Shown: positions 2,652-38,900 of the stretch, piece after piece
How the letters are laid out: each line of letters begins with the position of its first letter
How positions within the stretch are numbered: the first letter of the stretch is position 1
Source: Asterias rubens
Taxonomy: Eukaryota
Direction of reading: 5' to 3'
DNA: 64,000 nucleotides
Assembly: GCF_902459465.1 (NCBI RefSeq)
Contig: NC_047082.1
Coordinates: 5,580,001 to 5,644,000 of the forward strand
Notes under the pieces: model-generated
The model's input: only the letters and a program-made list of their open reading frames with translations
Databases searched by the model: none
Told to the model about the DNA's origin: nothing
Position numbers and translations under genes: made by a program

Positions 2652-4044
2652 TATGGTTAACTAAGCAGTTAAAGACTCTGGACACCTTTGGTAATTGTCA
2701 AAGATCAGTCTTCTCACTTGGTGTACATGTATCTCAACATACATGTATGTACACAATGACAAACCTGTAAAAGTTTGAACTCAATTGGGCGTCAAAGTTG
2801 TGAGGATTAATGGAAAAAAAATACCCTTGTCTCACAATAATGTGTGTTTTCTAGAGTGCATTGAAGGGATTGCAGAAAAGATAACTGCATTTTGTAACAT
2901 TTGTAAGTCAACAGAGGTATCAGGTGTACAAAGGTGTACAAAGTAAATTGCACTTCCCTATGGGAACTATAATGAACAGTGCAATTATATAAAAAAAATG
3001 CTGCAATCTTTTTATGCAGACTTGCAAAAGTTAGTGTATTTGGTCAAAGTGATTCTAACAATCCACAACAGAACGCAATACCAATTTTGTTTTTAGTATG
3101 AAGACACCATCATTCCAGACCACATGCCCATACAACTTAACCTGTGGTTTGGCGTTTTGCTGCATTTTATTATAACCTTGCTAGAAATGTTAACCACTTC
3201 CTGTTGGATGGCACGTTTGTCTTCAAATCTCTTTTGGACAGATTTATAGCGGACAATTTATAACACCTGGAACAACTTCGCTGACGGCTGCCTGAGTGTT
3301 GACGTTTATATTCACTCGAATGTTTAAGTGTGTAGCGTTATGAAGCAGGCTACTATACTGTGATACACTAGTTTCACCCGTACAAATAGCAACAACTTAC
3401 TTAGGAAACAGAGGTTTGCATCTAATTTAAGAAATCCAATATTTTAGAGTGAAAGTTTATCTGTGTTGGTAGTTAGATTCAATTACATGTAGGTAAACTT
3501 TTGATCACAACACTGAAAATTGTTCTCATACCTGAAATTTTCAAACGACAATTCGTCTTCATCAGCAGGATGACGCGGATGTTGAACCTGTGACCTTGCG
3601 TACGCGTGATTCCAAGACCGTGTCAGACTCCTGGGAGTTTGTATTGTGATCAAAATGTTGACCTGAATTACATCCAATATTTGTTACACATGGGAAAACT
3701 CAGACTGTTTTAGGAATACGGACAATACACCGATCCATAAGGCTCTGCCCATGGCACACGTGTGAGCAAGAACATGTTCGCCTCTCCAATGTCATTCTGC
3801 ACAACTCTGCCGCGCGCACCAAGCATACGCGCACACATGTCGGACCTTCTTTGCGTTGTGATTGGTCGATATGCAATGGGGCAGAGCTTAATGGATCGGT
3901 CTATTGGACAAGCAAGAACTGCTGATGCTTGAAAGCTTTATTGTGAATATATTTTCCCATTGATGAAAATTAATACCCCATCAAAATCTACCGCTGGTTC
4001 AGATACAATTGTGAACATTTGGATACCTCTTATGTGTTGGAATG

Positions 4045-4390
4045 CATCTATTATGCTGGAGCATACATGTACATGTACATGTACATGTGTACATGTACAT
4101 GTACATGACACATGTACTTGATCTATTATGCTGGAGCATACATGTACATGTACATGTGTACATGTACTTGATCTATTATGCTGGAGCATACATGTACATG
4201 TACACATGTACTTGATCTATTATGCTGGAGCATGCATGTACATGTACACATGTACTTGATCTATTATGCTGGAGCATACATGTACATGTACACATGTACT
4301 TGATCTATTATGCTGGAGCATACATGTACATGTACACATGTACTTGATCTATTATGCTGGAGCATACATGTACATGTGTACATGTACAAT
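4045..4390. repeat. Minisatellite TCTATTATGCTGGAGCA plus a variable (TACATG)n tract
   Basis: About 8 units seen directly, with unit length varying with the hexamer number. Confidence 0.9.
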
Positions 4391-4856
4391 ACCAACAAAG
4401 ACAATGAGAAATATTAACAGATACAATTTTGGTTGTTCATTAAAAACGTGATTGAATTGGTTTGCCTGGTCTTTCAATCTCAATCTTGAATGAGCAAGGC
4501 AATAATTTGAATGAAAACTTTGAAATTTATTTAATTCTGAATCTAAACTGCCAACAGTAATAACTGTAATACCTTGGAATAGTATTTGAAATTAAACTAA
4601 TTTTTGATAGGGATTTGGCAATGCTCAGCTTTTAATAGTTCTGTAGTGTCTTGGAATATACATGGGGAGATATTGATAATGGACCAAACAAATAATACCT
4701 GGCAATAAATATTTTTTGTTTTACCACATACATGTACACTGAAGGCAATGGCCACAAAGTAATAATCAACTATGATAGAATGCTTGCCAAGTTGAAAAGA
4801 AAATAATCAATTTTCGAAAGTGAATCAGAGTGTCAGTTACATACCAATGACAAGAG

Positions 4857-6090
4857 TATCAGTCAATCATGATTGGTTTGCAATGTCCAGTGAAATAGCA
4901 CTCAAGGGTATCAGTCAATCATGATTGGTTGGCAATGTCCAGTGAAATAGCACTTAAGGGTATCAGTCAATCATGATTGGTTGGCAATGTCCAGTGAAAT
5001 AGCACTCAAGGGTATTAGTCAATCATGATTGGTTGGCAATGTCCAGTGAAATAGTACTCAAGGGTATCAGTGAATCATGATTGGTTGGCAATGTCCAGTG
5101 AAATAGCACTCAAGGGTATTAGTCAATCATGATTGGTTGGCAATGTCCAGTGAAATAGTACTCAAGGGTATCAGTGAATCATGATTGGTTGGCATAGTCC
5201 AGTGAAATAGCACTCAAGGGTATCAGTCAATCATGATTGGTTAGCAATGTCCAGTGAAATAGCACTCAAGGGTATCAGTCAATCATGATTGGTTGGCAAT
5301 GTCCAGTGAAATAGCACTCAAGGGTATCAGTCAATCATGATTGGTTTGCAATGTCCAGTGAAATAGCACTCAAGGGTATCGGTCAATCATGATTGGTTGG
5401 CAATGTCCAGTGAAATAGCACTCAAGCGTATCAGTCAATCATGATTGGTTTGCAATGTCCAGTGAAATAGCACTCAAGCATATCAGTCAATCATGATTGG
5501 TTGGCAATGTCCAGTGAAATAGCACTCAAGGGTATCGGTCAATCATGATTGGTTTGCAATGTCCAGTGAAATAGCACTCAAGGTTATCAGTCAATCATGA
5601 TTGGTTGGCAATGTCCAGTGAAATAGCACTCAAGGGTATCAGTCAATCATGATTGGTTAGCAATGTCCAGTGAAATAGCACTCAAGCGTATCAGTCAATC
5701 ATGATTGGTTGGCAATGTCCAGTGAAATAGCACTCAAGGGTATCAGTCAATCATGATTGGTTGGCAATGTCCAGTGAAATAGCACTCAAGGGTATCAGTC
5801 AATCATGATTGGTTGGCAATGTCCAGTGAAATAGCACTCAAGCGTATTAGTCAATCATGATTGGTTGGCAATGTCCAGTGAAATAGTACTCAAGGGTATC
5901 AGTGAATCATGATTGGTTGGCAATGTCCAGTGAAATAGCACTCAAGGGTATCAGTCAATCATGATTGGTTGGCAATGTCCAGTGAAATAGCACTCAAGGG
6001 TATCAGTCAATCATGATTGGTTGGCAATGTCCAGTGAAATAGCACTCAAGCGTATCAGTCAATCATGATTGGTTGGCAATGTCCAGTGAA
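4857..6090. repeat. 52-bp tandem satellite, about 23-24 copies
   Basis: Unit TATCAGTCAATCATGATTGGTTGGCAATGTCCAGTGAAATAGCACTCAAGGG, with near-identical copies and no spacers. Confidence 0.97.
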
Positions 6091-6410
6091 AAAGCTGGCC
6101 TCTAAAAGGATTTGATCCAGTCAAATAAACCAAATGGTAAATTAATGATACCATGATAGTATATTGTTAATTTTAGTCAACAGCATACTTGTAATTCTTC
6201 CAAAGTTATAAATATTGTACTGCTAAAATAGCTGCATGGTGTATAGTCTTTACTCTATTTGTTACAGATGCATGAGCAATAAAATTGTTGTGTGGTGATA
6301 TGAAACATTGGGAAGTAAGTTATTTATTTGTAATCATACATGTACATTGAATTTTAATAATCTAAATGGTTATTTTGTCTTTGTAGCAGTGCACATGGAT
6401 ATCTGGCTAC

Positions 6411-6769
6411 TTAAAGGAACGCGTTGCCTTGGATCGGACATGTTGGTCTGTAAAAAGCGATTTAAAACCGCTTGTTATAAAATGCATATGTCTAGAAAGA
6501 TGTTTTAAAATTAGAATATAATGATCCACAAAAGTATCATTCAAAATTTTACGTCTAACACGGTCGGTCATTCATGGGAGTAAAAAAATTTACTCCCACA
6601 AATGGCCGACCGTGTTAGTCGACGAGGTAAACCACGCAATTTCAAGGCATATTTGTGTATACCATTGTATTCTACTTTTACAAAATCTTTCTACCTGTAT
6701 GCATTTTTTTAACAGACGGTTCAGAACCAAAGACCAACTCGACCGATCCAAGGCAACGTGTTCCTTTAA
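6411..6769. mobile_element. TTAA-flanked MITE family B (Kolobok-like)
   Basis: TIR TTAAAGGAACGCGTTGCCTTGGATCG / CGATCCAAGGCAACGTGTTCCTTTAA. A second copy lies at 57905-58277 in the opposite orientation. Confidence 0.85.
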
Positions 6770-8659
6770 GTACTGAACTAAATAGCCAAGTTGCAGGTCA
6801 TTTGATGTACATGTACATCACTGTTTAATTGTCTTTTGTTTAGTCTCAAAACTTGGATGTTGATGCAAACTATCAAAGATGTATACCAGGTTATGTGCAA
6901 TACTATATTTAAGAACCTAAATGCTGAATTTGTTTTTCATCAATAGGCCCTTTGTGGTTCATGTCTGATGACATTGACCAAAGAATACTCATCTTACATT
7001 TAACATGTACCGGTACATGTACAGTGTATGTATTTTAAATTGAATATAACTAAAGGACTGTCAACAGTTCATGTTTGTAGATCTGAATTGCAAATAAATT
7101 ATTGTAGATATCGACAATGTCTCTGGTATAAGTGCATGTTGGTTGTGTACACCTTTTTCATTAGTGTCTTGGATGTCAACAGTCAACCCCAATTCATAGC
7201 TAATCTCCAGTCTATATGCAGAATTCAAGTTCTCAGATCGCAACGCTCGTTTGGTGACTGCAGTTTTTTCCCACACTGGCCCTTCATCAAGCCTCATCAG
7301 CCAGCTATTTAAAAAAAATACTCCAAACCCATTTATTTGTTCAGACTGTAAAACCAATTTTTTAATATGTTTTGTTACTACATGGTTTGCCTTGAGCGTC
7401 ACTACATCATGGAGTTGTGTGAAAGTGCGGCAGTGTAACTGATGTAGGGTAAATAAAGACTGGGTTGTAGAACATGGGGATAAGAGATACAATGTAAAAA
7501 GGGCTCAAGGGATTTATTCTAATAATAGATACCTGATGACATTATAATGACATCATCAAGTTTGTTCTATCCTTATATTTAGGTTAAATCTTGAGTTTTG
7601 CTATAGAAGAGTTCTGAGAAAGTTACAAAGAAGAAGAAACAAAAACAATAAGAACCAAACTTAGGTAATAGGATTTATCCACAATTTATTTTAAAACCTT
7701 GAAATATTTATCTACATTTGATGTTAAATCTAAGTTTTAAATACATATACATGTATTGATACTTTTAATGTGTTCATTTCACATTGCTGCTTATCTTTCC
7801 TTTTCTTCATTCCCATTATGCATTTAGTATCATTTTAAAACCTTTACCGAATTTGCAAGTAATAATTGAAGTAGATGCATGATTCACATGCGTCTCTTAA
7901 TGTACATTATTAATCAAAAGTCTCTATGTAGTAACCAAATAGTTGTTATAGTTTTTAGCTTTTGTATTAGCCATGAAAAGAGGGACTTGGTAACTCTATC
8001 AATATTGCTCAAAAGAAATGTCTGACAAATTTGGTACAGATCAAAATAAGGCTAATTAACGTAATCCATGTTGAAGCATTCAGCAACAGAATCCATTTGA
8101 TACCTAGATGATTTTGTTGAATAAAAATAACGCAGTTGTTTGCCTGCACAAAATGAATGTTATAAGACAAGCGATACAGTACAAGAAGTAAATATTTCAT
8201 TTCATTACTCTTACCTCACATGACTCTCACATATTACTAATGTGGGCTTCCAAACGAGCAGTTTCTTCCCGAACAATTTCACTGAGCAGGAATGTATTTG
8301 ATATTACTATTTTGTTATCAACAAATGATAGGTATAGTCACATTATACAAAACAAAACTTGTTTGCAGATTAATCATTTCTGATGACGAACAATGCACTG
8401 CTGATTTGTCACCATTGTACAATGTATCGTGGTGAATTGCATGGCTTTGCAGTATAGTTTCATGACAATAACTACCGTCACCTGACAACTGTCAATTAGG
8501 GAACATTCTACATGTTGGTCATATTTTGCGCATTCATTTCATTTCATGAGTATTGAAATCACGGTCAAACAAATAAATATTGGCTAGTCCAAGTGCCAAA
8601 AGGGTCAAGACAGTAGATTGTGTTGCAAATACAGACGTTTCTTTATTAAGATGTAATAT

Positions 8660-8910
8660 AATATAATAATATTGTGAGTTTATATAGCGCTTTTTCACTC
8701 CCCAACGGGTGTCTCAAAGCACTTCAAATTATTACCCCTGGTCACTGGGACTTAATTCACTCCTTAAACCATCTCAGCTCCATGGGGAGTATACAGCCTG
8801 TGCAACAAATGCGCTACTCGGCTAAATCAATCACAAGAACCATCTCTGCCCTCACAGGTGCCCATTTACCCCTGGGTGGAGAGAAGCAATTATAGTTAAG
8901 TGTCTTGACT
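8660..8910 (-). mobile_element. SINE fragment with a conserved-core-type (Nin/Deu-like) central domain
   Basis: CCCATTTACCCCTGGGTGGAGAGAAGCAATTATAGTTAAGTGTCTTG resembles the conserved SINE cores of marine invertebrates (from memory). Confidence 0.5.
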
Positions 8911-9258
8911 TTATATCTTATTCAGGAACCCTAGCTACTCAAATCGGTTTTGATAAGTGGACTGCACAATTCTTTTATTAATGATTTATTTCTATTGTTT
9001 TGGTTTATTTTTATTTTATCTTCACCTTCCTTAAAGATGTTAACTTATAAGTACCGTTCATAAGACGCCTCTTCCCTTGCTATTTCTCATTCCAAGTTGG
9101 CTGATGGTAACAAAATCTTCAACAATATAGGCTTGTGCATGGAATTTGTGCCACTATATTTTCAAATTTGGCCACAAAAACTCTGAAAGTATACATCCTT
9201 ATCACTGAGTGGGTGTGTTTACATTGATATACATGTATACTAGGGTCATTAAACTTAA

Positions 9259-9484
9259 GTGTCTCTGCCTGTAAGAATATACCAAAGTAGGAGGGGTGAG
9301 ATTCATGAGTTATCAGATCTTCTAAAAAATAACATACCAAACAAATCAATCCCAAATACTAGTTTGTTGACTCTTTCGGTTTGGGAATTATCAGCCAAAC
9401 AGCCTTTAATTGAGGACAAACACATGTGCCAAGATATTATAAGTGGCTGTCCCCAACTTGGTCCATTCTCACAGGCAGAGACTC
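9259..9484. mobile_element. Internally deleted derivative of the 26415-27737 element
   Basis: TTAA|GTGTCTCTGCCTGTAAGAATATACC...CACAGGCAGAGACTC|TTAA shares termini and left subterminal sequence with the larger copy. Confidence 0.75.
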
Positions 9485-10575
9485 TTAATGAATAAGCAGT
9501 TAAACTGCCTGGCATGCCTGGGGAAGTCAGCAGTCCTACTGGTTTGTGTATGATTAGGTTTAACCTCATAGAGCATGTTATAGCTAACTTCACTGCTAAC
9601 TTTGCTGCTAAATATTCACAGCTGGGCTACGCATGACCAAACAACTTAGCTACAAAGTACCTTGCGATCACACAAGGCATGGTTGCAGTAAGCCAGCCAG
9701 AGTTGGCACGTTAGAAAGTTAAGGCCTATGTATGTAAAACATGCAATGTTCCATATAGTTTTGTTCAAGTTCGCAGCAATTCTACATTGTATTTTAAAGT
9801 TCCGTATTTTTTTCTCAGTTAGCATTGACTGTAGTTTATTTAAATTCCCAGTGATTTTAAATGACAAATGTATTTTGTTTTGCTCTGTTTTTGTCACTGC
9901 GTCGTGTTACAATTTCGTCCCCATACATTAGTGCACGATGTCATAGTACATTGCCTGTGGATGGGAAGGAGGATGAGCACGTGGCCGGCCATAGGATACA
10001 TTTTCAGATCGTACTGATAATTTACAAACATGGGTCGTCAAAGTGGCCGATTTTGTCGCCTTTTGAGTATGATTTAGCTGTCAAAATAAGAAAATGTAAA
10101 AAATGTAAAAAACTTCAATATTTTTGCACAGCAAGTGAGGGAAAATGTCAAGGCCTACGTGCAACACCAGGAGAAAAAATAAACGTCAGCGAAAACATCA
10201 AGCTGAATATTCGAAAAATCATTATGTTTACAGCCTCGTAGCGTCAGTTGCGTTCACACGTGAAAAACACACTTCTAAATTCTTTATATGCGGACAAAGT
10301 ATAAGTTTCGCTGCTTAGTTGAAATTACTTCGAAAATTTCGCTGCTAACTCCAAGTAAGCATTGTAGTTTACTATTTCTTCGCTCACACTGTCAACAAAT
10401 TTTCGCTATTAGCTAGCAGCGAAGATAGCAGTGAAGTTAGCTTCGTGTGAACAAACCCAAAGAAAGTCAAACAGAAACACCAACAGAGCTTCACAAACAT
10501 GGTTATTAGGTAATCATTAATGGTATTAACATGAACATGTCAAAGAATCTAGTTTACTCCAATGTACAATGACAT

Positions 10576-13500
10576 CTATTCCCAGCTTTCCCAATCATCA
10601 AGATCAACTTCCTCGTTGGTATTTCCAGTCTGATGGACTGCTACTTCAAGATCTTCCTCCGATACATCAATGTCATCAAAATCCTTCTCCCAATCGTCAC
10701 TAAGACTTGAACCTGCAGTCAAAAAACAAATGATATCGTCAAATCACACATTTACAATACAGCTAAATCATATAGAACATCATTTTAAATTAGCATTAAC
10801 CTGGAATTCTTTGACTCTGATTGGTCAAAACTCAATCAACATTATCAAGTGAGTTTGTGTTCCATGTGATAAAATATTTGGCCCCTGAACCAGGGTAGAT
10901 TAAGTACAAATGTACAAGTTGTGTGTGTAGTATACATGTAATATGCAGGAAGGCTGTTCCTCAAAAGAACCATTTTTATGAGGGAATAGATAAGCGTCTG
11001 ATCCAGTTTAGACCAAACTTACTTGCACATGTGTGTTCCACAACTCTCATAAGTTAAAATGCATGTTTTGGGGTTTTATTTCGTGTTTTATTATCGCAAG
11101 GCCGGTGCAAACAGATACTCGGTGCCTGCTGTACCCTGAGTACATTGGAAGATTAGTCTCCCCGGATTTTCTGCTCTCCCCGCTTGAGATTCGGAGAATA
11201 GCACAAGACAGGAGAGAATGGGAAAAGCTTGTGTCTGCCTGCTGTGCAGTTGACTGATGATGATGATGATTTCAGTGAGTTTTGTAGTTGCATACACTGT
11301 ACATGTACATGTTTGCACACACGATATCAATTTAAAGTACATGTACATGTAGCTGGTGTGAAGCAACAAAGTACATGTACTTATAAAGTTGGAGACAAAT
11401 TTAACATGCTGTTCATGTTCAACATGTAAATATGGCCATTGCACTTGGATAAAGCGAATGAACAAAATTTGCAAAAGAATAAGTACATAAGTGTTTTTGA
11501 CTGGAAATTATAAGCCTTCAATTTGTTCCATGAACACAGCGCTGGGAAGAAATGGTACCCACATACTATAACTCTCAATATCATAACATGAAATAATGTA
11601 AATGTTCATAAATAGCTTGAATTTGTTACATTGACATCTATGTATAAAATCTTATCAAATGCCCTGGCTATAAATAACCCTTTGGTGCACAAGGCGGTCA
11701 CTAGCGACCACCAAAAACAAGTCAAATTGGACTTTTATAAACGGTCATAACTTAAAAACTATAACCCCAATATATACCGCCTTCATTCGGTTGTGTAGAG
11801 AGACTGTTGAGCTTTAGTTTAGTGTGATGTTCAACAGGGGGTGCTAATGAAAAAAATCAAGAAAAACACAGTTGAACATGTTCTTTTTTTGCTTTAAAAA
11901 CAATTAATCTGTGCACCAAAGGGCCAAGTGCCATACTTGATGACAATATGTACCTTTATTACTTGTTTCTGATACAGTTGGTGAAACCTTATTTGATTGT
12001 TGACTGGTACTTTCTTGGGTTGATACCATCAATGGTTCCTGGGTTGATATCATCAATGGTTCCGTTAAACGTTGATCACATTTTGTAGGATCAGTCTCCA
12101 ATCTACCTTCTTCACCAGCACTAGTATCACATGTTCCATCTAGTTCAGTTTCATCAGCAGCAGTAGATACCAAAGGCATCTGATCTGGCATGTCTGGGGC
12201 TGTTCTCACTTGAATCGGTGTGTCATTAAGGTGTTCAACACTGGTATCAGTCATGATTTGTATCCCCTTCTCTTCACTGTTGAATTGTTTAATTTGATTC
12301 TGATGAATCAATGATGTTTCTGAATCATGACAATGCATAGATTCCTTTTCGCTGTCTTCTTCATCAAGTGGTTTATCAATGTTGGATACTTCTATCACGT
12401 TGTAATCGTCTGCTTTCAATCGTTCACTCGCCCGTTTACTAGTTATTGATGTTTGGATGTTGCTGCTGTGATGATGAAATGAAACTGAAGAGTCATCTGC
12501 AGTGAAAATTATTAAATGATTGATTAGTTACCAAAATCAACACAAGTAACTAAAAAGCAAAGTCCCTAAAATGATATTACAGGTTTGGGTACTTTTTGTA
12601 GGACAAAAAACACAATCTCCACAGATTTACATTAAAACTTACACAGTTTGAAGATAATGATGGTAGAAAGCTTCCCAGATCAGTGATCATGAGACGAAAA
12701 TTATTTTAGCATGTAAAAATGTATTTTCATGACATTGTTTTACTCATTTCTCAAAAACTATACAGCACCTCAATAACTAATATTTTAAGGGAAGCTTTCT
12801 ACCATCGTTACCTTCAAATGGTTTAAGCTGAATGTAAATCTGTGGACATTGTATTTGTGTTACAAAAAGAACCCAAATCCGTTAAGCGTAATTTAAATCA
12901 CTGTAATTGTATCAACGGAATTAGAACACTGTGTTTTATCTTGTCATAAGTTTTACAAGCATACTTGTAAGAAGTAACTATCAATACTAAATAACTTGTA
13001 GTAAACTTGCGGGTACAACCATGTATAATATCTCTTGAGGGAGTGTTGGCTCTGAGAAGAGCCGATTGGGGCTCGATGTTTCCAACAGTATACTCTGCTC
13101 ATCTAAAATCCCAAATTGCGAGTGCTTAGTGTGACGCCATTGGGGTCTAGGGCCCGCTTTAAGGCCCCTGGAACAATTTAAGTCGTAGAATCTCTCTGGT
13201 GCAATCTAAGGCCATTTCAGAGACATTTCATGGACTCATTAAATTCATCTGAAATGATTAAAAAGTAATACCAATAATGAAGTACAAGTGTGTCGACTTG
13301 ATGACGACAACAGAGGTAACTTTTGAATGCTTTTACGTATGACGCTGTTGTGACAGCAAATTGGTAAGCTGCGCTGTGAATGTGTGTCGCAAAAATTGTT
13401 TAGATTGAAAACAATTTAAAATAAATAAAAGAAAAATACACAAGAAGTTCTTCTCACAAATTAAACAAAGAAAAAACATTCATGAGTATTTTTTACAGCG

Positions 13501-16500
13501 TATCAATAGCGTATCAGTAGGAAAAAAAGAATGTCGGAACGCTATTGTATGCCTGGCTAGAACGCTGCTCTTTACTATCTATAATTTCCATATTATCTAT
13601 ATATACATGTAATTATCCATTTTGTTTCTAAATTTGGGGTTGAACAAAGATAAATTGAGTAGATCGGGACTTGTACCTGCGACCTCTGGATTAATGCGCT
13701 GGCGCTCTGCCAGCTGCGTTAGGCGGTCTCCTTACTTTGTCAATAAGCCTATCTATGTCCAAGGGAGGTATTATAGGCAAACTGTTTACCTTCATCATCA
13801 TCCCATTGAAGCTCTTCATCATCAAGTGTTTGTGAGGATGTCATATCAGCACGTTCCATCAGTGCTGCTCTCCTTGCTTCATCTTGCTTCAACTGATCAA
13901 CTTTATAAAAGTAACGTCCCCAAAAATCAGCATTGGATACAACTGCAGGTACCTGTGAATAAGATCAAAACATTCAATCAGACAGAAACAAATTAGACAA
14001 ATTGGGCACGTTATTATAATTTCACTTAATTGGTCTCCCAGTGGAAACAAGATTGCAAATGGTGTCAATGTCAAATCTGTCAGACCACTCCCTAAACGGA
14101 GCATGTATGAATTTGGCAGATGGATAACTACTCATCAAGTGGAAGAGGTTCTGAATGCCACTAGCACTGGTGAAAAATCTAATGGTTTTTTTTATACGTT
14201 CAATGCTGCACTGGATCTCTACTTTCCTAGTCAAACTTCACACTTATGACAAACCATGGATCACTGCTGAAATCAAGGACACAATCAAAGACACAATCAA
14301 AGAACAATAACAATAGCAATAGCGATAGCGATAGCGATAGCGATAGCGATAGCGATAGCGATAGCGATAGCGATAGCGATAGCGATAGCGATAGCGATAG
14401 CGATAGCGATAGCGATAGCGATAGCGATAGCGATAGCGATAGCGATAGCGATAGCGATAGCGATAGCGATAGCGATAGCGATAGCGATAGCGATAGCGAT
14501 AGCGATAGCGATAGCGATAGCGATAGCGATAGCGATAGCGATAGCGATAGCGATAGCGATAGCGNNNNNNNNNNNNNNNNNNNNNNNNNNNNNNNNNNNN
14601 NNNNNNNNNNNNNNNNNNNNNNNNNNNNNNNNNNNNNNNNNNNNNNNNNNNNNNNNNNNNNNNNNNNNNNNNNNNNNNNNNNNNNNNNNNNNNNNNNNNN
14701 NNNNNNNNNNNNNNNNNNNNNNNNNNNNNNNNNNNNNNNNNNNNNNNNNNNNNNNNNNNNNNNNNNNNNNNNNNNNNNNNNNNNNNNNNNNNNNNNNNNN
14801 NNNNNNNNNNNNNNNNNNNNNNNNNNNNNNNNNNNNNNNNNNNNNNNNNNNNNNNNNNNNNNNNNNNNNNNNNNNNNNNNNNNNNNNNNNNNNNNNNNNN
14901 NNNNNNNNNNNNNNNNNNNNNNNNNNNNNNNNNNNNNNNNNNNNNNNNNNNNNNNNNCATGTATACACATTTATACAGAAAGAGAGGCTATTGAAAGCTA
15001 TAGATTCTGAGACCCAATTTTGTAGCACCTTATAAGGGTTTACAAGGTGCTACACATGTACAGCGCACTTCTCAGCCTTATAAAAAACGGACCTAATCAA
15101 AAACGTCAGGTTGCATTTGTAGAGAAGAAAACATTCCTTTGGCGTCTTCTTCGTAACAAAGTCAGCCACGCAATCAGTCGAGCCAAAAATTAATTCTACC
15201 AAAATCGTCTCCAGTGATCTATCAGGCTGGCATAAAGGAATCCAAATGCTCACCAATAAGACTCAGAAGCTCACCATGCCCACTGTGATTTCCGTCCTAG
15301 GCATACCCAAGAATGGTGACAAAGCTATCGCAGAGGCAATTAACCTTTTAACAGTCTCTCAAGGCAGACCCCCTATCAATCCCCAGGAACTGCCTGCAAA
15401 TCAAAGCTTGGGATATGTTCAATGCTCTTTAAAAATTTTTTCCCAAGAAATCAGCAGGCCATGATGGGCTCCCGGGAAAACTAACAAAAGAATTTGCATG
15501 TGAGCTTAGCATACAGTGTACACGTTTCTGATATATTTACATGTACATGTAACTCCTCTCTTATTGAGGGTTGTGTACCACAGACTTGGAAGGATGCAAA
15601 TGTTGTGCCAATTCCTAAAGAAACGCCAGCCACCATCACAAAGCTGAGACATATTTCACTGACTGCTCTCCAAGCAAAAATATGCGAAGGGTTTGTTTCA
15701 AAATGGGTTCTTGAAGATATCTGCACATCTATCGGCCGTAACCAGTATGGTAGTATACAGGGGTCATCAACTACTCATTGCTTAATCGAACTCCTTGATG
15801 TGCTCTACAGGTATACTGACAAAGCCGATAGAGTTGGCACGCTGGTAGTGACAGACTTTTCCAGGGCTTTTGACTGCGTCGATCATACTTTGGCTATTCA
15901 GAGATTACACGATCTAGGTGTCCGTAGCGAAATAACACCTTCTATCGATAACTTCCTGACGGCACTACACAAGAGAGTTCAATACCTGTCTGCCCTATCA
16001 GAATGGGAAACCATTTCCTGAGGAGTTCCCCAGGGTACGAAGTTGATGGGACCCATCGCATTCATTGGCTTTATAAACGAGCACTTCTGAAAGTAAGTAC
16101 CGACTCTTCTAGTTTTAAGTATGTCGATGATCTAAGCCTTGCTGAGGTCCGTCCTGCCAGTGTGCATACTCAGATTGACTTGGACCTTCAGGACCTTGAA
16201 GATTGGACCGACAGTAACCACCTCAAGCTCAATCCCTCTAAATGCAAGGTTATAAACATGATAAATGCAAGTGTGCTTCAAAAGAAACCCTCCATGTCCT
16301 TCAGATATGAAGATTGCTGACAAGGGGCTTGCTGGTGACTGAGACCAAGCTTCTCGGTCTTACTGTTCAATCAGATCTTAGATGGCATTCTCAGGTCAAT
16401 GGTGTGTAAGAGCAGTCATAGAATTTACATAATTGGTCGTCTCAAGCGTTTTGGTGAACCCGTTATGGTCTTGGCATCTGTGTATGTTGGCTACAATGTA

Positions 16501-22177: not shown

Positions 22178-22235
22178 CTGAGGAATATAAAACGACAAGA
22201 AATTTAACAGTAAAACTATTCAGAAATTATAGTTG

Positions 22236-22609
22236 TTAAAGCCATTGGACCCTTTCGGTACAGAAAAAAACCAAAAAGTTCACAGATTTACAAATAATTT
22301 ACAGGGTTTACAGAAGGTAATGGTGAAAGACTTCTCTTGAAATATTAGTCCATGAAATGCTTTACTTTTTGAGAAAACAGTAAAACAATATAAATTCTCG
22401 TTAGCGAGAATTACGGATTTATTTTAAACACATGTCATGACACGGCGCAACGCGCGGAAACAAGAGTGGGTTTTCCCGTTATTTTCTCCCGACTCCGATG
22501 ACCGATTGAGCCTAAATTTTCACAGGTTTGTTGTTTTATATATAAGTTGTGATACACGAAGTGTGGGACTTGGACAATACTGTTTACCGAAAGTGTATAA
22601 TGGCTTTAA
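22236..22609. mobile_element. TTAA-flanked MITE family C (Kolobok-like); second copy at 43044-43413
   Basis: Termini TTAAAGCCATTGGAC and TAATGGCTTTAA. The interior is partly similar to family A. Confidence 0.85.
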
Positions 22610-22619
22610 ACTTGCATCA

Positions 22620-27200: not shown

Positions 27201-28390
27201 ACAGATTTCAATTGAAAAATAATTGGGATCATGTTGGCCCACCAATATAACAAAGGTTAAAGGTCATATGAAACTACACTACTGCCTATTTCGGGCGATT
27301 TTGCGTAGTCTAGAAATCCACGCCATGGGATCTTATAGGCACGTTGAATTATGAGGCGTTGAAAATGGCACGAGGGCATTGTTCGCCAAAGGTTCAGGTG
27401 CGCGTAACATCATGACGCGCCAACGAGATCCCACTTTTTTTTATACTTTTGTTATAAGCCCAACTAGAGGTTTCAAAAAATATTTTACTTTTGCTGGGAC
27501 GAGCTTGGCGCACATTTTTGTGTTTACAGGGAATGTACTATTCGTTTCTTGAGGGTCTTTTGGCCCAAACTTTGATAACTGGCAACTCCAAAACCGAAAG
27601 CGTCAGCAAACTAAAATTTTGGATTTATTCGTTTGGTATGATGGTGTATCACTCTAATTTTTTAGAAGAAGATCTGCGAACCCATGAATCACACCTCCCC
27701 CCCCCCCAATTTGGTACATTTTTACAGGCAGGGACTCTTAAACGGGGTAGAAATTCAAGCAGAAGATGAAGAGAAGGATCTTGGGGTTTACCTCACATGA
27801 GACTGTAAACACACCCTACAGTGTACGAAAGCTGCTGGTATAGCAATGCAGAGCCTTAGGATCATCAGAAGTACCTTCAAGTACATTGATAGGGAAAGTT
27901 TTGCTATCCTGTACAAATTACATGTAGCTTACATCAGACCACACCTCGAGTATTGCGTTCAAGCATGGTGCCCATACCTACCACAGAAAGATATAAAGTG
28001 TCTGGAGAAAGTGCAGAGAAGAGGGAACTTGATCTCTTTCCCCTGGAAGTAAGAAGAGTGCGAGGGGACCTCATTGAAACCTTCAAGATTCTCAAGGGGC
28101 TCGTGGATATAGACGCCAAAAGTCTTTTCACACTCTCACAAACAAATAACACAAGAGGGCATGGCATGAAGCTACTGAACAAAGGGCTCAATCTTAGAAA
28201 ATATTTCTTCACACAGCGAGTTGGTGATAACTGGAATAGACTCCCAGCCAAAGTGGTCAATGCCAAGACAACCAATCAATTCAAAAACAGCTTAGACAAT
28301 TACCTGAATGAAAATGGATATGGGGTGTTAAAAGGCATAAGCCTACAATACTAAAAATCAATTCAAACCTTAAGTGTAAGTGTAAGTGTT
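24250..28390 (+). mobile_element. CR1-clade LINE (APE endonuclease plus RT), decayed, split by a DNA transposon insertion
   Basis: PDIIGITESW, GDFNFPDIDW, SDHDGL, YLDYSKVFDTVPH, SGVPQGSVLG, FADDTKLY, YIRPHLEYCVQAW and RGDLIETFKILKG motifs, with an (AAGTGT)n 3' tail. Confidence 0.95.
26415..27737. mobile_element. 1323-bp non-autonomous DNA transposon with long inverted arms and a TTAA target duplication (Kolobok-like)
   Basis: TTAA at 26411-26414 and 27738-27741, with termini GAGTCCCTGCCTGTAA / TTACAGGCAGGGACTC. Removing it restores the CR1 reading SYILNGVEIQAEDEEKDLGV. Confidence 0.92.
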
Positions 28391-28680: not shown

Positions 28681-30230
28681 ATTCCCAAAGCCAAACAAAG
28701 GTTTATCGCGATTCAGAACCGCAATGCGTTATGGGTAGGCAGATGGGGCAGTTTGCTATGCGGTGTATGTTGTCATGCACTACTCGCGCACGCATCGCCT
28801 ATCTATATCTTTGTGTGGGTTCAACAGCGCCCTCTCTTGATATTTTGCTATTCGCGATAGAATTAATAAAATGGACCTTGTCATCATCATTCATTTATCA
28901 GAATGTGAACAAAAACATACATTTCTTGGTTTACAAAAAATAACCAGGACAAGAAAAATACTGTGATCAGCAGATACGGTGCAGTCTTTTTTCATTTAGG
29001 GCCTACTGAATTTGTTTACCAGTTGTGTTACTCAGTTACTGTTTAGTTTACCCATGGTTTACCTGGACGCCATCATTGCTCATTGTTTTTTAACTACGTT
29101 GTCCCCACTGAGCTCTCCTTGGCTTGCTCTCTGCTGATTGCTGACACGGTGTGATCACAAAATGATTGCCGAAATGTCGACGAGAGGCTTTCCAATCCAA
29201 CAGCTTCCAAACCTACAGCACTAACTATGTTCCGCCCTACTAACGCTGTGCCCCAACTTGATAATCTTCACTCTATAAAATGTTGTTGTTTTTTGCTGTG
29301 TCTCTCTAGCTCTCTGGTGTAGTTGTTGATCCGTCGTGCCGTCCGCCAGCTGCAGCTAGCAAGCTACATTCATCGTGCACGTCACCGTCACACAAACCAG
29401 CCCAAACGCAATCTCTGGATTTGCTCAATTCCGAGATTGAGCCACCCAATCTCGAGATCGGGCTGCTTAATACCCAGATTGCGCACAAATTAACCATCCA
29501 CTACGCGTATACACCATAGTATACACTGATGTCTGTGCATTGTGTACACGTAATGTACATAATGTGTACATTCCGTTAAACTTGCATGGCGCGCCCCTTA
29601 GCCTCCTATATGACATTTGCATCAAAACTGCATGCATACTGTATGCTGATGATGACAGCGACATCATTTGTAGGACAATGTAGTGTGATCATAAGAGTCG
29701 TCAGAGAGTTGGTCTCATCAGCTGCAACCGGCAGTGATCGGGGAACAGCATAAAGCCCCCATATCACAACCCGCGATAGTCATAAGTGATCACTAATCCA
29801 CTCTGTAAAGTGGCATCTTCAACGACAGTCTAACTAACTAACACTCAGATGAAAGTTTTGCTCTCTTTCTAGGAGCCATGACATTTGCTGCTCAGTGATG
29901 TGAGGCTTGTCATGCTTGTCCGCCGCCCCCACTGCACACATCATAAACTACAGGTAGGCCTATTGCTAGGGTTTTTAACAAAGTGTCCCTGTCTAACTAA
30001 GAATTCACCCTATTTTAGGCCTACTTTCAATCTCACCAATCACTACTTGTTGACTTGAAGAGGATTAAATTAAAGGCAGTGGACACTTTTTATGGTAACC
30101 AACTGTCAAGAGACCAACATGACCAATCTGCTCACTTGGTGGTCACTCTTTTGGTGTAGGCCTATAGCCATAAATAAAATAAACCTGTGAATATTTGAGC
30201 TCAATTTGGTCGTCGAAGTTGCGAGATAAC

Positions 30231-31870: not shown

Positions 31871-32029
31871 CATGGCTTCTACTAGTGACCGAGAAAGGCA
31901 AATCGTCTTGTAAGACAGCTCCTTTGCTTTCTGTAGAAAAAAAAAACAAGAAAAGTTTGTCTGTTTCTAGCACTCCAAACTCTGCGCCGACCTCCTCTTG
32001 GGTTTAGCAAAGTAGCAGAGAAATCAACC

Positions 32030-33200
32030 TCGCCTTGCCAAGGCAGGAGATCAATGTGCTCATCACGCAGAGTTGCAGTTTCAGAGCCATGAGCCAGGAA
32101 TTGGGTCACTTTGTCCTATTTCCCAACGGCATTCATCTTTGGCCCCGAAAGTTTCTTGAGTTCCTGAGACACAGTTTGTTGCTTAAAACGCAGGTACAGG
32201 TTTTACCTCGCCTTGGGTAAGAAGTCAACCTAGTACTGTACATGTCAAGGACGTTTACCTCATGGTCCCCATTGTCATAACATCGCAAATACCTGCGATT
32301 TCTTTGTTTGTTTTAGTTTGCTTTTCTCCCCTTTGGCCGGTCAATGCTCCAAGAACATTTCCAATGGTTCTCAAATCAGTTGCTGCACATCTTCATCAAA
32401 TGGTATTTTACCTAGACGACATTTTCGATTAAGTTTTCTTATGTCGTATGTCTTAATCTAGGCAAATCATCAGACGAATGTAAGGAGAACTTGAACCTAC
32501 ATGTAATTCAATATGTCATGTAGTTTGGGTTCTTGATAAACTACGACAAACGGCATTTTGTACCATCGCACCAGTTAACTTACCTTGGTTTTTTCATCAA
32601 TTCATCTACAATGACTTTGGCCCTGCCAGTTGAGAGAGTATACAAGATTGTAGAGCATTGCCAAAGGGTTCTTCAAGCAAATCTCTTGACGGTGAGAGAT
32701 CTTGCAAGACTTACTCGGTCACCTATCTTCAACCATTCCAGCAGTATTTCCTGCACTGGACAAGGTGGTTGCCCTGCACAGAGAAAACTCCTACATGTAA
32801 ATGAGTTGAGTAGATTTGGAATAAACTTGGATAAGCTGCATCAGAGTGTGTAAAGTCAAACCCTTCGCAACCCAACTCCAGATTGGGGTGCCTGCCCAAC
32901 TCCAGATACAATAAACCAGACAGATGCATCGCTCCAGGGATTGGGGTGCCTGCCCAACTCCAGATACAATAAACCAGACAGATGCATCGCTCCAGGGATT
33001 GGGGTGCCTGCCCAACTCCAGATACAATAAACCAGACAGATGCATCGCTCCAGGGATTGGGGTGCCTGCCCAACTCCAGATACAATAAACCAGACAGATG
33101 CATCGCTCCAGGGATTGGGGTGCCTGCCTATGGTAGGTGCAGTGCAAGGGTAGCAGATGGTCCTTAGAGGAACAGTCTCAAACCATCTCAATTTGCTGTA
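32030..33200 (+). mobile_element. DIRS-like (tyrosine-recombinase retrotransposon) RT/RNase H remnant
   Basis: KDVYLMVPI, APRTFPMVLKSVAAHL..FYLDDI, INYDKRHFVPSHQLTYLGFFINSSTMTLALP and TDASLQG fragments fit DIRS-type RT and RNase H. No recombinase was seen. Confidence 0.7.
32871..33126. repeat. 58-bp tandem repeat, 4 full copies plus a partial
   Basis: Unit CCCAACTCCAGATACAATAAACCAGACAGATGCATCGCTCCAGGGATTGGGGTGCCTG. Confidence 0.97.
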
Positions 33201-33914
33201 GCAGTGTTTACGCCCTCATAACTCTGTTTTCGCTGCAATGTTCGCAAGAGAGTTGAGCACCAACTCAACTGTTCAGAATTATGTTGCCAATTTGTGACGT
33301 CAACATTTGTATTGCGTTCACATTTGCAGGAAGTATGAACTGGGCTTTATGTTTGAGCCACAGTTAAAATTATTATTTTATACGTTTTATTTTGAATCAT
33401 TGTAAGTTTAATGTTTGTAATGCTGAATTTGTTAATCCACCAGCTATGCATAAACCCATGCCTATTTATCAGTCAAATAACCATACATTGTAAGTAAAAT
33501 GTGATTCAAATTTGTCTTTGGCACAGATGCTGCAAATGGATAGTGTGAAGGAGAGAAAAGACAAGAAGCTGATTTCAAATTCTGTATGGATTCCAATACA
33601 ATGGTAAATCTTATTCAATATGCTTATAAAATGACATAGCTTTTCTACAGATGTTGTTTTTGCTTGTAAACCATACACAGTTTAGATCCTACCCGTATTG
33701 GCATATTCAGAGTTATATTTTGGATCCAAACATGTACAACAAGACATAATGTAATGATTTTTTTTTTTTTTACTATTGAGCAATAGTGAATCATTGATCC
33801 ATTAAAACATTGTGTCAGCAGTAAAAAAAACTATCCTCTTAGCAACCAACGTCCTATACTATACCCTTACCAACACCAACTTCGTGGTACAGTACCATGA
33901 GTCCAGTGCAAAAG

Positions 33915-34110
33915 GGTGGCATGGTTGGCTTGTGCGTAAAGCGTTGCCTCTCACCAAGGTGACCCCGGTTTGAATCCCGGCCAGGTCCATAATAATATGT
34001 GAGTTGAGTTGTGCGTTGGTTCTCAGCTGTGCCACGAGGGTTTTCCAGACCATCCAGTTTTCTCCCTCGGGAAAAATCAAACACTTTCGATCTTGGCTGT
34101 GCTCCGTGGT
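33915..34110 (+). mobile_element. tRNA-derived SINE with a V/Meta-like core
   Basis: tRNA-like head with GGTTTGAATCCC, then ATGTGAGTTGAGTTGTGCGTTGGTTCTC...GAGGGTTTTCC...CCAGTTTTCTCCCTC. Confidence 0.6.
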
Positions 34111-35948
34111 CATAATGAGTTGATGTGGCTGGCAGCCAAAGGCGCCCTTGCATGCCTGCTTCTCGAACACGTTGTAGCCGTGTCCTTCAGCAATTCAGCT
34201 ATTAGCTGCGCGTAAGGATNNNNNNNNNNNNNNNNNNNNNNNNNNNNNNNNNNNNNNNNNNNNNNNNNNNNNNNNNNNNNNNNNNNNNNNNNNNNNNNNN
34301 NNNNNNNNNNNNNNNNNNNNNNNNNNNNNNNNNNNNNNNNNNNNNNNNNNNNNNNNNNNNNNNNNNNNNNNNNNNNNNNNNNNNNNNNNNNNNNNNNNNN
34401 NNNNNNNNNNNNNNNNNNNNNNNNNNNNNNNNNNNNNNNNNNNNNNNNNNNNNNNNNNNNNNNNNNNNNNNNNNNNNNNAAAAGAAAGATCTCATTTTCC
34501 TTTGTGCCGGTAACTCCTCGAGTCGGGCTACGTCCCGTAGCCTTAGATCTCAAGGGTCTTTCTCAGGATCCTCGCTGTTATTATTATTATTATTGTCTAG
34601 GGGCACATGGTACATGTAGGGAGTTATAAAACAAATATTGACTACATGTACATTTGCTACTGCTTCATTTATGGTTAAAACTATGACTCCCATGGCGATC
34701 TCTAGGGACTTTCCCTCAGCTACGCTGCACCTCAGGAAAACAGAACCCGCCGAGGATGCTAAGGCACCTTGCAAGTTATAGCCTTTAAAACCATAGCACT
34801 GGAAGCAGTCAATATTTACATACATGTACCATGACTCTCTGCTCAATGTATGTTTGATTATTACTCATTTCAGGGAGTAGTGTTGACTGCCATAGAGTTG
34901 TTCAATAGCCATGGGCAGAGAGCCCTTATGTAAGTAAAGGATCAATCGCTCCTCCGTGCTAAACAAACTTCTTTCCCCAAATTGATAATTAGATTGAGGT
35001 TGAAAATGACATGTACATGTTGTAACATCACTTTTCCTCAATATAATAATGGAAAGTCATCTGGTCATTGAAATAAAAAGGGGAATAAGGTTACACATGT
35101 TATCATAGTTTAGGATTACTTTTCATTCCCTTAGATATGATGAGTGCTACAAACATGTTTAAAGCTTATGTGGGTAAAATAAAAATAAATCTCAAAATTG
35201 TTTTCAGAAATGTTACAAGGAATACTGGGAACAATTTCCACTAGTGTAAAGATAAAAAGTTCAAGCTGAATTTTTGTTCAAGAAGAATCAAGACTTAATG
35301 TCCTTTTTTTATGAACAAAAAAACATTGACTAGTACAATATTTGATCCTCCTGGTTAATGTGCCGACGGTCTACCAACACAGTACACATGTAAAGTTCAC
35401 TTGCTCAAAACTCCAAAGCCTACATTTATGACACAATCTAAGACCCTGACTGTCATTGAGAAAGTGTTGAGATTGCGATGCAAAATGGTTATTGATGTGT
35501 AGCTCTTACTAACCTTGGGCGATATCACGACATTAACGAAAATTGCAATACCATTTCTTACGGTATCGTCTTGATTTTTTGTAGCAGTTAAAGTGTAGCT
35601 CTAGCTTTGTGAAATGTTGGCATTTTAGACTTCAAATCAAAAAAATTCACACCATGGGTAGGAGTACACCCAAAAGATGTATACCTCGATTGAATGGAAT
35701 TTTACACTTCAAAAAATTTATCGCGAATATCGCAAAACCTTTTTGACGATACATCGTGGTTTAAAAAAGCCATATCTTACCACTTTGTCCTCTCCATTGG
35801 GTTTGGGTACTGCATTAATAGTAAATCCTTTTTTTGACGTTACATACATTTTAATTTAATTATGCATAATTGTATGCAAGTTAAAGAGTACAGTGCTCAA
35901 AAGCATTGACTTTTACCCTGACTGAAAATACTTTCTTTCATAAAACAG

Positions 35949-38900
35949 GGTGTGAGGACTGTGGAAAAAGCCATATGGGGGATTGCCCAGTACATGGACC
36001 TTTGTTAAAGGTTAGGGATAAAGTGATACCTACAAGAGCAAGACTGACTTTACCCCACTACCTCATGTTAAAAGAGCTGGAGCTACGCACTGCAAACCAA
36101 CAAGGTAAATTTATAATACATGTACAGTGATGATAGCCAATCTTATTTTTCACTTAAAAAAAGAACATTTCCCAATGTGTTAAAAGTGAACATGCATGCA
36201 TTGAGCTGCTACAATTTTCCTGATTAATGTAGTTCTGACTTACCCTATCACAACCCTGATATGTTGGGGTATTCCGCCCGGAACACCTCTTGTTAGTTGT
36301 TTGGAGCGAAGCACAGACACCTCTTACTAGGTGTTGGGAGCGAAGCTCGGACACCTCTTACTAGGTGTTGGGAGCGAAGCTCGGACACCTCTTACTAGGT
36401 GTTGGGAGCGAAGCTCGGAACACCTCTTGTTAGAAGTTTGGAGCGAAGCTCGAAACACCTCTTGTTAGTTGTTTGGAGCGAAGCTCAGACACCTCTTACT
36501 AGGTGTTGGGAGCGAAGCTCGGACACCTCTTACTAGGTGTTGGGAGCGAAGCTCAGAACACCTCTTGTTAGAAGTTTGGAGCGAAGCTCGAAACACGTCT
36601 TGTTACAACCAGGTGTTTGGAGCAAAGCTCTTACTCTATGTAGGTGTTCCAAGCAAAGCTCGGAACACCTCTTAATACATGTTTGGAGTGAAGCTCGGAA
36701 CACCTCTTACTTGGTGGTTGGAACGTAGCTTCGAACACCTCTAGTTAGGTGTTTGGAGCGAAGCTCAGTACACCTCGTACTAGGTGGTTGGAGCTAATTT
36801 TTTGTTAGGTGATTAAAGCGAAGCTTGGAACAAATCTTAGTAGGTGTTTGAAGCAAAGCTCGGAACAGCTCTTACATGTCTTAGATGTTTGTTGAGAAGC
36901 TTGGAGAACCTCATTTGAGGTGTTTGAAGAGAAGCTGGGAACACGTCAATTTTGGTATTTGGAGCGAGGCTCGCAACACCTCTTTCTCGATGTTTGGAGT
37001 GAAGCTCGAAACACCTCTTGTTAGGTGTTTGGAACAAAGCTAGAGACACCTCTTACTAGGTGTTCGGAGCGAAGCTCGAAACACCTCGTAATACATGTTC
37101 AGATCGAAGCTGGGAACACCTCTTACTTGGTAGTTGGAGCGAAGCTTTGAACACCTCTTGTTAGGTGTGAGGAGCGAAGCTCGGAATACCTCGTACTAGA
37201 TGTTTGGAGCGAATTCTTTTTAGGTGATTTAGGTGTTTGGTATTTGGAGCGAAGCTCAGAACACCTCTTTTTAGGTGTTCAGAGCGAAGCTCGAAACACC
37301 TCTTACTTTTAATTTTGTTCAGGTGATTCAGGCATTGAGCTTGGAACACCTCTTATTATACATGTAGATACAAACACTACATGTAAAGGTTTGGTTTGTC
37401 TTAAAACTCCTTGCCCGTCACATATTATGCTGAACATAGTAACGTTTGTAACATGTTATTCTCACCTCTTGTTCTGTGCTTTTCTCTTTACAGTATTGGG
37501 AGTATTTGCTCGTAAGCTTATTCAGCAAAGAACACAGTTTGGTCCATTTATCGCCCCAAGAGTTCCAAAATTGGAGATCGTACCACCTGATAATAAACTC
37601 ATCTTCAAGGTAGTATTTTTGTGCAAAATTGAAGAAAAAAAACCAGTAAATCTGCCACGTTCTTCTGACAAATTGTGTGAGTGAGCATGTCTTAAAATGG
37701 CATTAGTGTTTGGTTTGTTTTACAGAAGCAACAAATAATGAGGATGGATTTACTGGAATGAAAAAGGCTGTTGTCAAAGTGAAGGATTGGTCAAAATAAA
37801 ACAAATTATGTATTCAATGGAGGGAAATGTACCATTTCTAGAGCGAGAAAGGGACAATACTTTAGTTTTCTTAGAATTGAAGGTTAATGTACCAGCCAGT
37901 TGTTTCCCCACTTCAGTGCGTTCTCTAAGAGAACATCTTACATCACATTTCATGTACAATCTAGTATAATCCCATTTACATAGTTGTCTTTATAGTGTTA
38001 CAGTGTTAAAATACCAATAACAATTTCTGTCCATTCTGATAAAACTTGAAGGTGTTCAAGAATAAAACTGAAGTCTCCACACTAGACCTCAGCAATGAAA
38101 ATGCCTGCAGTTGGATGATGTTTGTGCGAACTGCGACAACATTTGAGGAACAAAACTTGGTTGCCTATCAGTTCAACCAGGAAATCTACTTTGCTACTTG
38201 TAAAGTAAGTCACTCTGATTTATTATTATTTTTATGGGGTTCATATTGTGTTATGCCTGGTTGGTGGTGTGTGATGGAATAAGTCAAGTTGTTGTAATGT
38301 CAGCGTCCGGTACCATCAAATTTGTCTTGCATTCATGATAGGCCCTAGCATGCCTAGTGTGCGGATAAAATATTTACGATAGTCTAGTGATAATATTAAC
38401 AATGTTTTGCACCAAGACTGGCGCATCTTGTGCATAAAACATTGCTTCACCAATTTGATAAAAATTTGACCAGAAAAGACATCCTCGATTATAAATGAGG
38501 TCAATGTGCTGGTACTTTACCAACTGAGCTACATGTACATACAGCCATGTGTTGGCAGTCCGAAGGTCATTGGTTTAAATCCTGCCCTAGTAAAATTCTC
38601 TTAATTCAACCCCAATTAATTTGAAATTGACCCAGTCAGTCCCCTTGGATTATTTTTTTTTTATTAATCAGTTTTCACCCTAAACTACTATGTTGTTTCA
38701 CTTACTGAGTTGAAATTCCATTAGACTGAGTGCCACCTATGGGTTGGTATGAGAGAAGCATGGGCACAATCATCATTCACGACATCGGCAGTTCAAATGT
38801 GACAAGCGGGAATTTTTCTTTCTTTGATCTCTTCCTTAAACCACGTCAATTTATGACAATCCATGTAGCACAATGAGTGCATGCCCTGTGCAAGCTGCAC

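Follow-up and report, generated by a model that had tools for sequence, protein, structure and literature searches.

A recurrent insertion of CATGTA at TA in the Asterias rubens genome as a possible excision scar of Tc1/mariner-type elements

Introduction

For the Tc1 and Tc3 elements of Caenorhabditis elegans, a 2-nt staggered cut was reportedly described by van Luenen in 1994 and by Vos in 1996, and Minos-type elements leave a +6 scar that consists of four terminal bases and a TA. These systems are the closest described counterparts of the subject of this study, the 8-nt word TACATGTA, in which the bases CATG stand between two TA dinucleotides and which recurs in a 64,000-nt stretch of the echinoderm Asterias rubens (C22:5580001-5644000, referred to below as the window). 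A sequence-only reading of the window had pointed to recurrent insertions that convert TA into TACATGTA, and this observation is confirmed here. An isolated TACATGTA is best read as the both-ends-retained excision scar of a TA-inserting Tc1/mariner-type element with CA...TG ends, a reading in which our confidence is about even.

Transposases of the Tc1/mariner group place the cut of the non-transferred strand a few bases within the element, and after end joining 2-4 terminal bases remain between the TAs (PMC6943129). Excision of Sleeping Beauty gives TACAGTA or TACTGTA, and this TAC(A/T)GTA footprint resembles the Asterias word in being a TA-flanked, end-joined remnant at an AT-rich palindromic target (PMC6943129); it differs in the 3-nt stagger, the pairing overhangs and the size of +5, the +5 forms being not enriched in A. 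rubens. With Tc1 and Tc3 of C. elegans, the Asterias system would share the TA duplication, the CA...TG ends and the symmetric consensus CAYATATRTG (PMC9635669), whereas the C. elegans scar is mostly +4 and that of Asterias is +6, with both ends kept and with fixation in the germline at tens of thousands of places. Minos is alike in its six added bases (four element bases and the duplicated TA), but the four bases in its scar come from one of its two ends, and the invariant palindrome of Asterias would need CATG termini, which were not found. Excision scars have also been detected between close relatives by a comparison of rice species (PMC4423477), where they are heterogeneous and tied to identified families, whereas in Asterias one invariant scar dominates the 6-bp indels. 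The uniform +6 is a variant of the Tc1-type excision outcome, not its textbook result, and no genome whose locally commonest 8-mer is a single invariant scar was described in the literature searched.

Abundance and distribution of the word

Genome-wide counts refer to the 417.6-Mb A. rubens assembly, and an unbiased sample of 263 kb was composed of the window and 20 random 10-kb pieces. The window contains 68 copies of TACATGTA, which is its commonest 8-mer, against 1.76 expected and a maximum of 5 in dinucleotide-preserving shuffles. Seventeen copies lie within 4064-4387 and the remaining 51 are dispersed, as given in the following line (no strand is assigned to this or to any feature listed below).

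76-55315: 51 TACATGTA sites outside the minisatellite of 4064-4387, with a density that declines across the window from 11 per 8 kb to 0

The excess over other words at TA that had been suspected is borne out by the larger samples as well. In the 263 kb, TACATGTA occurs 112 times, and three words of equal dinucleotide content occur 13, 7 and 13 times; in the genome, 91,620 copies stand against 20,653 of TGTATACA, a palindrome with the same dinucleotides, which gives a surplus of about 70,000 copies over the matched control. The window belongs to a hot region, since it has 23 seedless sites (defined here as neither G before nor C after the site) where 5.9 are expected from the genome mean (P = 7e-8).

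Contigs built from independent sequencing runs hold all ten sites of 6300-12299 without gaps, which indicates that an assembly artefact is not the source. Two assembly gaps exist (14565-14957 and 34220-34479), to which the sites at 13604, 15538, 32792 and 34611 are closest; they are irrelevant to the finding because each site is a local 8-bp feature and none adjoins a gap.

Six-base insertions at TA in repeats and LINE fossils

The individually characterised sites are distributed over a copy of a miniature inverted-repeat transposable element (MITE), fossils of long interspersed nuclear elements (LINEs), heads of short interspersed nuclear elements (SINEs) and other sequence, and some of them could be compared with the sister species Asterias amurensis.

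2724-2731: TACATGTA scar 1 in a MITE copy, an exact 6-bp gap in nine sister copies, empty site TGTATC
2740-2747: TACATGTA scar 2, at a distance of 16 bp from scar 1 in this MITE copy, an exact 6-bp gap in nine sister copies, empty site ACATATGC
15538-15551: double scar in a LINE fossil, where a 12-bp deletion restores the peptide SDIFNSSLIEG
17783-17790: scar within a tRNA-like SINE head, at the TA of GAGCTA, from genomic word counts
20646-20661: two scars side by side, the pattern that a TATA target would give, by direct reading of the sequence
21268-21275: TACATGTA scar in a repeat copy, 6 bp of which are missing from 17-28 paralogous alignments
25141-25154: LINE fossil with a double scar of two TACATG units and a final TA, where a 12-bp deletion restores the frame
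25399-25406: A. rubens-specific scar in a LINE fossil; A. amurensis lacks the 6 bp and has CA as its empty site
26018-26025: scar in a LINE reverse-transcriptase fossil that adds the residues YM, plain TA in A. amurensis and a gap in the R2 reverse transcriptase
38530-38537: scar at the corresponding TA in the head of another, unrelated SINE copy, common to A. amurensis
39550-39563: TACATGTA and a second palindrome, TAGGCCTA, with one common TA; A. amurensis keeps TAGGCCTA and has a single T in place of TACATG

The two inserts that the MITE copy was said to carry in excess of its sisters are thus present, and deletion of CATGTA restores the LINE peptides at all the sites for which this had been proposed. 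At 26018, the alignment with the solved R2 reverse transcriptase extends over 81 residues and contains a sole gap, of two residues, at the inserted YM. The double scar at 25141-25154 is also found in A. amurensis, which has one extra base there. The inserts reported in SINE copies were likewise recovered, their positions being placed at 17783 and 38530; the bodies of these two SINEs are only about 60% alike, and CATGTA follows 48 of the 4,141 genomic CAACTGAGCTA words, on 19 of the 22 large contigs.

Private insertions in repeats were polarised against at least three paralogues. Three of the nine polarised private 6-bp insertions are scars of the CATGTA type and no other inserted sequence recurs among them, and control words showed no 6-bp paralogue gaps of scar type. 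The empty site is TA with two exceptions, namely CA at 25399 and TC in a repeat on the locus L037, whose units between 1230 and 1560 read TC where three sister units hold the full scar. Separately, the window reads TACATGTC at 32237-32250 where A. amurensis has TC, a scar-like 6-bp insert whose empty site is not TA.

These comparisons also bear on the possibility that the word is a repeat-consensus motif, a chance excess or an assembly artefact. Paralogues cover 39 of 156 sites; 12 of the 39 are common to the paralogues, as a repeat-borne motif would be, and 7 of the 39 have private 6-bp gaps. Moreover, the other enriched TA...TA words TATGCATA, TAGGACTA and TACATTTA are entirely carried by repeats, and TATGCATA and TAGGACTA were rejected as further scars on this ground. 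Against such an origin of TACATGTA, 117 of the 156 sites lie in DNA without a paralogue in the sample, the shuffles never reach the observed count, and both the independent runs and the assembly of the second species hold the sites. As the main cause, repeats, chance or artefact are already refuted, and the probability left to them is negligible.

Comparison with Asterias amurensis

Orthologous DNA of the sister species supplies the strongest test. A 33.9-kb piece of A. amurensis (L054) was obtained via its protein P0009, and 27.1 kb of it were aligned to positions 25060-54090 of the window with 3.2% substitutions, the alignment block across the second assembly gap being left out. The aligned blocks contain 21 A. 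rubens scar sites, of which 13-14 are common to both species. At 26018, A. amurensis has a plain TA and A. rubens the scar, and in the reverse direction the L054 positions 5678, 17883 and 13155 are TACATGTA in A. amurensis and TA in A. rubens. Such clean differences in both directions imply that scars arose repeatedly in both lineages after the split; scars were gained in both Asterias lineages after the split and, more often, before it. With the tandem-repeat zone excluded, ten 6-bp indels distinguish the two species, and four of them are clean scars and two are scar-like.

At L054 24042, a 6-bp insertion in A. amurensis yields TAGGTGTA at TA, which is a non-palindromic TA...TA insert and may be the one-end four-base scar of another family.

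Seeds, slippage and the array at 4064-4387

A rival account would be microsatellite birth, in which TACATGTA, equal to 1.3 units of (TACATG)n, is produced by slippage from TGTACA- or CATG-like seeds. Seeds are indeed over-represented, as 19 of 114 isolated sites have CA after them, against a background of 9%, and G before or C after is found in 57% of the genomic copies against about 38% expected. In addition, doubles are in excess, short-range clustering is evident (10 gaps of at most 40 bp against 1.8 expected) and one hexamer of length variation exists between two paralogous loci. This moderate over-representation of seeds points to a contribution of slippage or re-use to the doubles and short arrays. 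However, 84 of the 114 isolated sites are without a preceding TG and without a following CA, which also disposes of the concern that the inserts always arise next to a CATG seed, and where the empty site is seen, in sister copies or in A. amurensis, it is a plain TA between unrelated flanks. Slippage, moreover, has no way to turn a dinucleotide into a stretch with six new bases, and it leaves the symmetry of A at -3 and T at +3 described below without an explanation. It is already refuted as the main cause, and we regard it as very improbable.

One accumulation of hexamers in the window requires a separate account.

4064-4387: 44-bp minisatellite with 2-3 TACATG hexamers per unit (Tandem Repeats Finder: period 44, 6.5 copies, 93% matches)

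It had been proposed that re-use of new TA sites built the array at 4045-4390, which finds no support: the stretch is the minisatellite of 6.5 units given above, and its multiplicity of hexamers is due to unit duplication, not to repeated re-insertion. In doubles, the TA within CATG-TA-CATG matches 6 of the 8 flanking positions of the Tc1 consensus, which is a possible reason for the doubles and for the gaps of at most 40 bp. Re-use of the scar TA and slippage are indistinguishable here for doubles and short clusters.

Target preference and shape of the scar

Among the 16 words of the form XY-CATG-XY, the TA form alone is enriched (112 against 9 expected), and across all TA-NNNN-TA words an excess that is not carried by repeats was found only for TACATGTA and TAGGCCTA. 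The predicted bias towards TA targets is therefore real, as the TA-flanked word alone is enriched and the empty sites are mostly TA.

The flanks of isolated, de-duplicated sites carry a symmetric signature, in which A is raised at -3 and T at +3, T is lowered at -1 and A is lowered at +1. This trend persists in 59 sites that have neither a seed nor a CATG-like word within 8 nt. At genome scale, 39,108 sites are without G before and without C after, and among them ANH-scar-DNT (A at -3, T at +3) is found 6,021 times against 2,380 for TNH-scar-DNA, the ratio at ordinary TA sites being 0.94. The Tc1 integration consensus CAYATATRTG / AYATATRT is likewise symmetric and was confirmed on 1,659 insertions (PMC9635669), and the scar flanks match this published symmetric target preference of Tc1. 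The empty site ACATATGC of the scar at 2740 fits AYATATRT at 7 of 8 positions, its last letter being C and not T.

The scar size of +6 would correspond to two bases from each end or to four palindromic bases, and it is among the canonical sizes (+4 for Tc1, +5 for Sleeping Beauty and mariner, +6 for Minos). The 3+3 decamers are at expectation, and none of 15 private 4-bp insertions is of the +4 scar type. One-mismatch variants suggest that the scars are young, with 61 transition neighbours against 55 expected, a signal too noisy for use as an age estimate.

A proposed two-base excision model and its candidate donors

The insertions, their TA specificity, their symmetric target preference and their separate accumulation in two sister species are observed. 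To account for them, a Tc1/mariner-type element with CA...TG ends would integrate at TA and duplicate it, and upon excision the transposase would cut the non-transferred strand two bases inside each end, whereby each flank would retain TA and two element bases. Germline repair would then fill in and join both ends without loss to give TA-CA-TG-TA, a +6 product, and each isolated TACATGTA would represent one insertion followed by one excision. As such a cut-and-paste element moves on while its scar remains, scars would pile up and donors would be rare, so that scars (about 70,000 in excess) would outnumber the donors. The stagger of 2 nt, the joining of the ends without loss and the nature of the donor family are what we infer in this scheme. 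The version with two bases from each end is favoured because a palindrome results from any termini, so that TAGGCCTA is covered as well. Since +4 is usual in C. elegans, a uniform +6 would need lossless fill-in and blunt joining, or a 4-nt stagger on CATG termini.

Candidate donors were sought among the Tc1-type machinery of the genome, in which 93 DDE_3 matches were found. The CA...TG, TA-flanked Tc1-like element that had been predicted does exist, in one instance and elsewhere than at a scar: an intact element of 1,769 bp at L007 1090-2862 (C16:9.60 Mb), with a 30-bp inverted repeat and the ends TA|CACTG...CAGTG|TA. Its open reading frame (ORF) encodes 344 aa with the domains HTH_Tnp_Tc3_2 and DDE_3, the spacing from the second D to the E of the catalytic triad is about 46 residues, not 34, and an exact-protein look-up of the transposase gave no match. 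The element stands in the context TAGATG-TA / TA-CACTAG, and the preceding TAGATGTA is one mismatch away from the scar.

An inverted-repeat scan of 363 kb yielded CA...TG candidates, all but one of which were rejected as internal parts of larger, mostly TTAA-flanked elements, the repeats extending past the TA. A Tc1-derived non-autonomous family of 1.1 kb, with 206-bp inverted repeats and the ends TA|AACTGC...GCAGTT|TA, is a derivative related to the intact Tc1-like element. One TA-duplicating member is present in A. amurensis only (L054 16394-17538), where the window has an unoccupied TA run at about 39,537-39,543, and its presence attests that the genus has seen TA-specific transposition recently. 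Three TTAA-flanked MITEs and one element with a 7-8-bp duplication complete the lineage-specific insertions in the 27 kb of alignment.

Several results weigh against the two-base excision model. The end sequence of the L007 element is essentially unique in the genome, which makes it a single-copy element, and the 263 kb of unbiased DNA contain no true TA-flanked CA...TG element, none at or beside any scar. An occupied allele at a scar was found neither among the 21 + 21 sites of the 27-kb A. rubens/A. amurensis alignment, which is a small sample, nor in the contigs of four sequencing runs over 6 kb, so that the series of TA, TACATGTA and full element that had been predicted is missing from the orthologous alignment and from the 263 kb alike. 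The recently mobile AA...TT-ended family should leave TAAATTTA as its scar, and this word is not enriched (40 against a control median of 34). The CAGTA and CTGTA inserts at TA that had been expected show no excess, TACAGTA and TACTGTA being counted 44 times against 47-57 expected; one-end four-base scars TACAxyTA, with xy other than TG, are at expectation; and the +4 form TACATA was counted 199 times against 229-277 expected, a high background that could hide a modest excess. In C. elegans, the usual somatic scar of Tc1 is +4, in 78% of cases (PMC13148408). Finally, some lineage differences at scars are unclean, namely +4 at 26363, +5 at 39550, +7 at 34821, +9 at 27919 and +12 at L054 14619.

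With respect to the last point, about 20 indels of 5-9 bp in 27 kb would hit 21 scars some 0.2 times by chance on a rough estimate, and three such hits were seen; scar sites hence seem prone to further indels. Repeated insertion with imprecise excision, or independent excisions from an ancestrally occupied site, would explain this. The original claim that TA-CA-TG-TA is a both-ends-retained footprint accordingly stands in part: the TA bias, the hexamer excess, the seed independence and the target signature are in its favour, whereas the occupied allele was not found and +6 is not the textbook size.

The uniformity of the scar raises the alternative of excision with a 4-nt stagger, as inferred for Minos, in which donor ends reading CATG would give self-complementary overhangs that anneal and are ligated. 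Scars of +6 are of the Minos type and 2-4 terminal nucleotides are left according to PMC6943129; the lack of any excess of TACAxyTA words, 3+3 decamers and +5 forms is in keeping with a single such product; and ends that are cohesive can be joined unprocessed, whereas CA overhangs of 2 nt are unpaired and give mostly +4 in C. elegans (PMC13148408). On the other side, no CATG-ended element was seen, as the only frequent words that begin with TACATG come from arrays or from within the long inverted repeats of a different family, and TAGGCCTA would require a second family with palindromic GGCC termini. We consider the 4-nt alternative rather unlikely.

The scarcity of donors can also be taken at face value, in that a TA-directed process would act without a mobile donor, either through a stationary Tc1-like transposase that nicks preferred TAs or integrates tiny end-derived fragments, or through an unknown repair pathway. 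Donor elements are missing in the scans and in the alignment, the scars cluster at the very short range given above, and a potential enzyme exists: a 2.2-kb unit without inverted repeats, two copies of which are 94% alike (L003 42-2271 at C1:27.44 Mb and L009 59-2267 at C15:14.40 Mb), has an intact ORF for a DD34E Tc1-type transposase of 372 aa. This unit starts with a pyrimidine tract and CAG, ends after AATAAA, has TACATG clusters upstream, and may be a host-gene-like, stationary transposase. However, the writing of a fixed CATG without element ends has no known mechanism, whereas ordinary insertion and excision predicts all the observations and a cut-and-paste system should have far fewer donors than scars. 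The donor-free process is accordingly judged improbable.

The second palindrome

The 263 kb contain 26 copies of TAGGCCTA, where 1.4 are expected, and the genome as a whole has 27,776. These dispersed copies stand for the most part in unique sequence, and their flanking letters are G at -1 and C at +1.

29955-30164: three TAGGCCTA sites within 210 bp, all three common to A. amurensis

Further TAGGCCTA sites of the window are located at 39556-39563 and 60648, and all four sites in the aligned region are common to A. amurensis. TAGGCCTA is probably the scar of a family with GG...CC ends.

Other mobile and tandem repeats

Several further repeats were recorded in the two species. At 26410-27744, the LINE fossil is interrupted by a foldback element of about 1.3 kb that is flanked by TTAA and has inverted repeats of at least 300 bp; the first 90 bp of this element have at least 37 genomic matches at 94-99% identity, which indicates a young family. 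A MITE family of about 375 bp, with TTAA duplication and the ends AGCCATTGG...CCAATGGCT, is represented in the window at 22234-22610 and 43044-43417, and the copies at L054 11330-11694 and 30484-30843 are two A. amurensis-specific insertions within 30 kb, from which recent mobility of the family follows. Another MITE family flanked by TTAA, about 370 bp long and with the ends AGGAACRCGTTGC, is found at 6408-6772 and 57906-58276, and it has one A. amurensis-specific insertion at L054 28517-28886. In addition, a 281-bp MITE with the ends GGGGTCGAAATT... and a 7-8-bp target duplication is present in A. amurensis only (L054 18082-18362, orthologous to window 40074-40080).

The tandem repeats include a 52-bp satellite of 24 units at 4851-6095, an (ATAGCG)42 array at 14313-14564 that adjoins the first assembly gap, and a 35-bp tandem array at 36279-37305, the length of which is very different between the two Asterias species.

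Implications

A bolder version of the finding, which we think decidedly unlikely, would be that germline repair is so faithful that the genome serves as a datable, near-lossless ledger of excisions (about 70,000 CATG and 25,000 GGCC scars), which is still being written with donors almost absent. A stationary transposase without inverted repeats would then mobilise very rare non-autonomous elements, or TA-directed insertion would proceed without a donor, and scar sites would be indel hot spots.

Excision footprints are known locus by locus, whereas in Asterias a single scar accounts for 4-6 of the 10 six-base indels that separate the sister species. If the interpretation as an excision scar is true, these sites would offer a direct count of past cut-and-paste events, beyond what copy numbers give, and they would constitute a recurrent source of in-frame two-codon insertions. 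They would also give insight into the way in which non-complementary ends made by a transposase are joined in the echinoderm germline, apparently with nothing lost.

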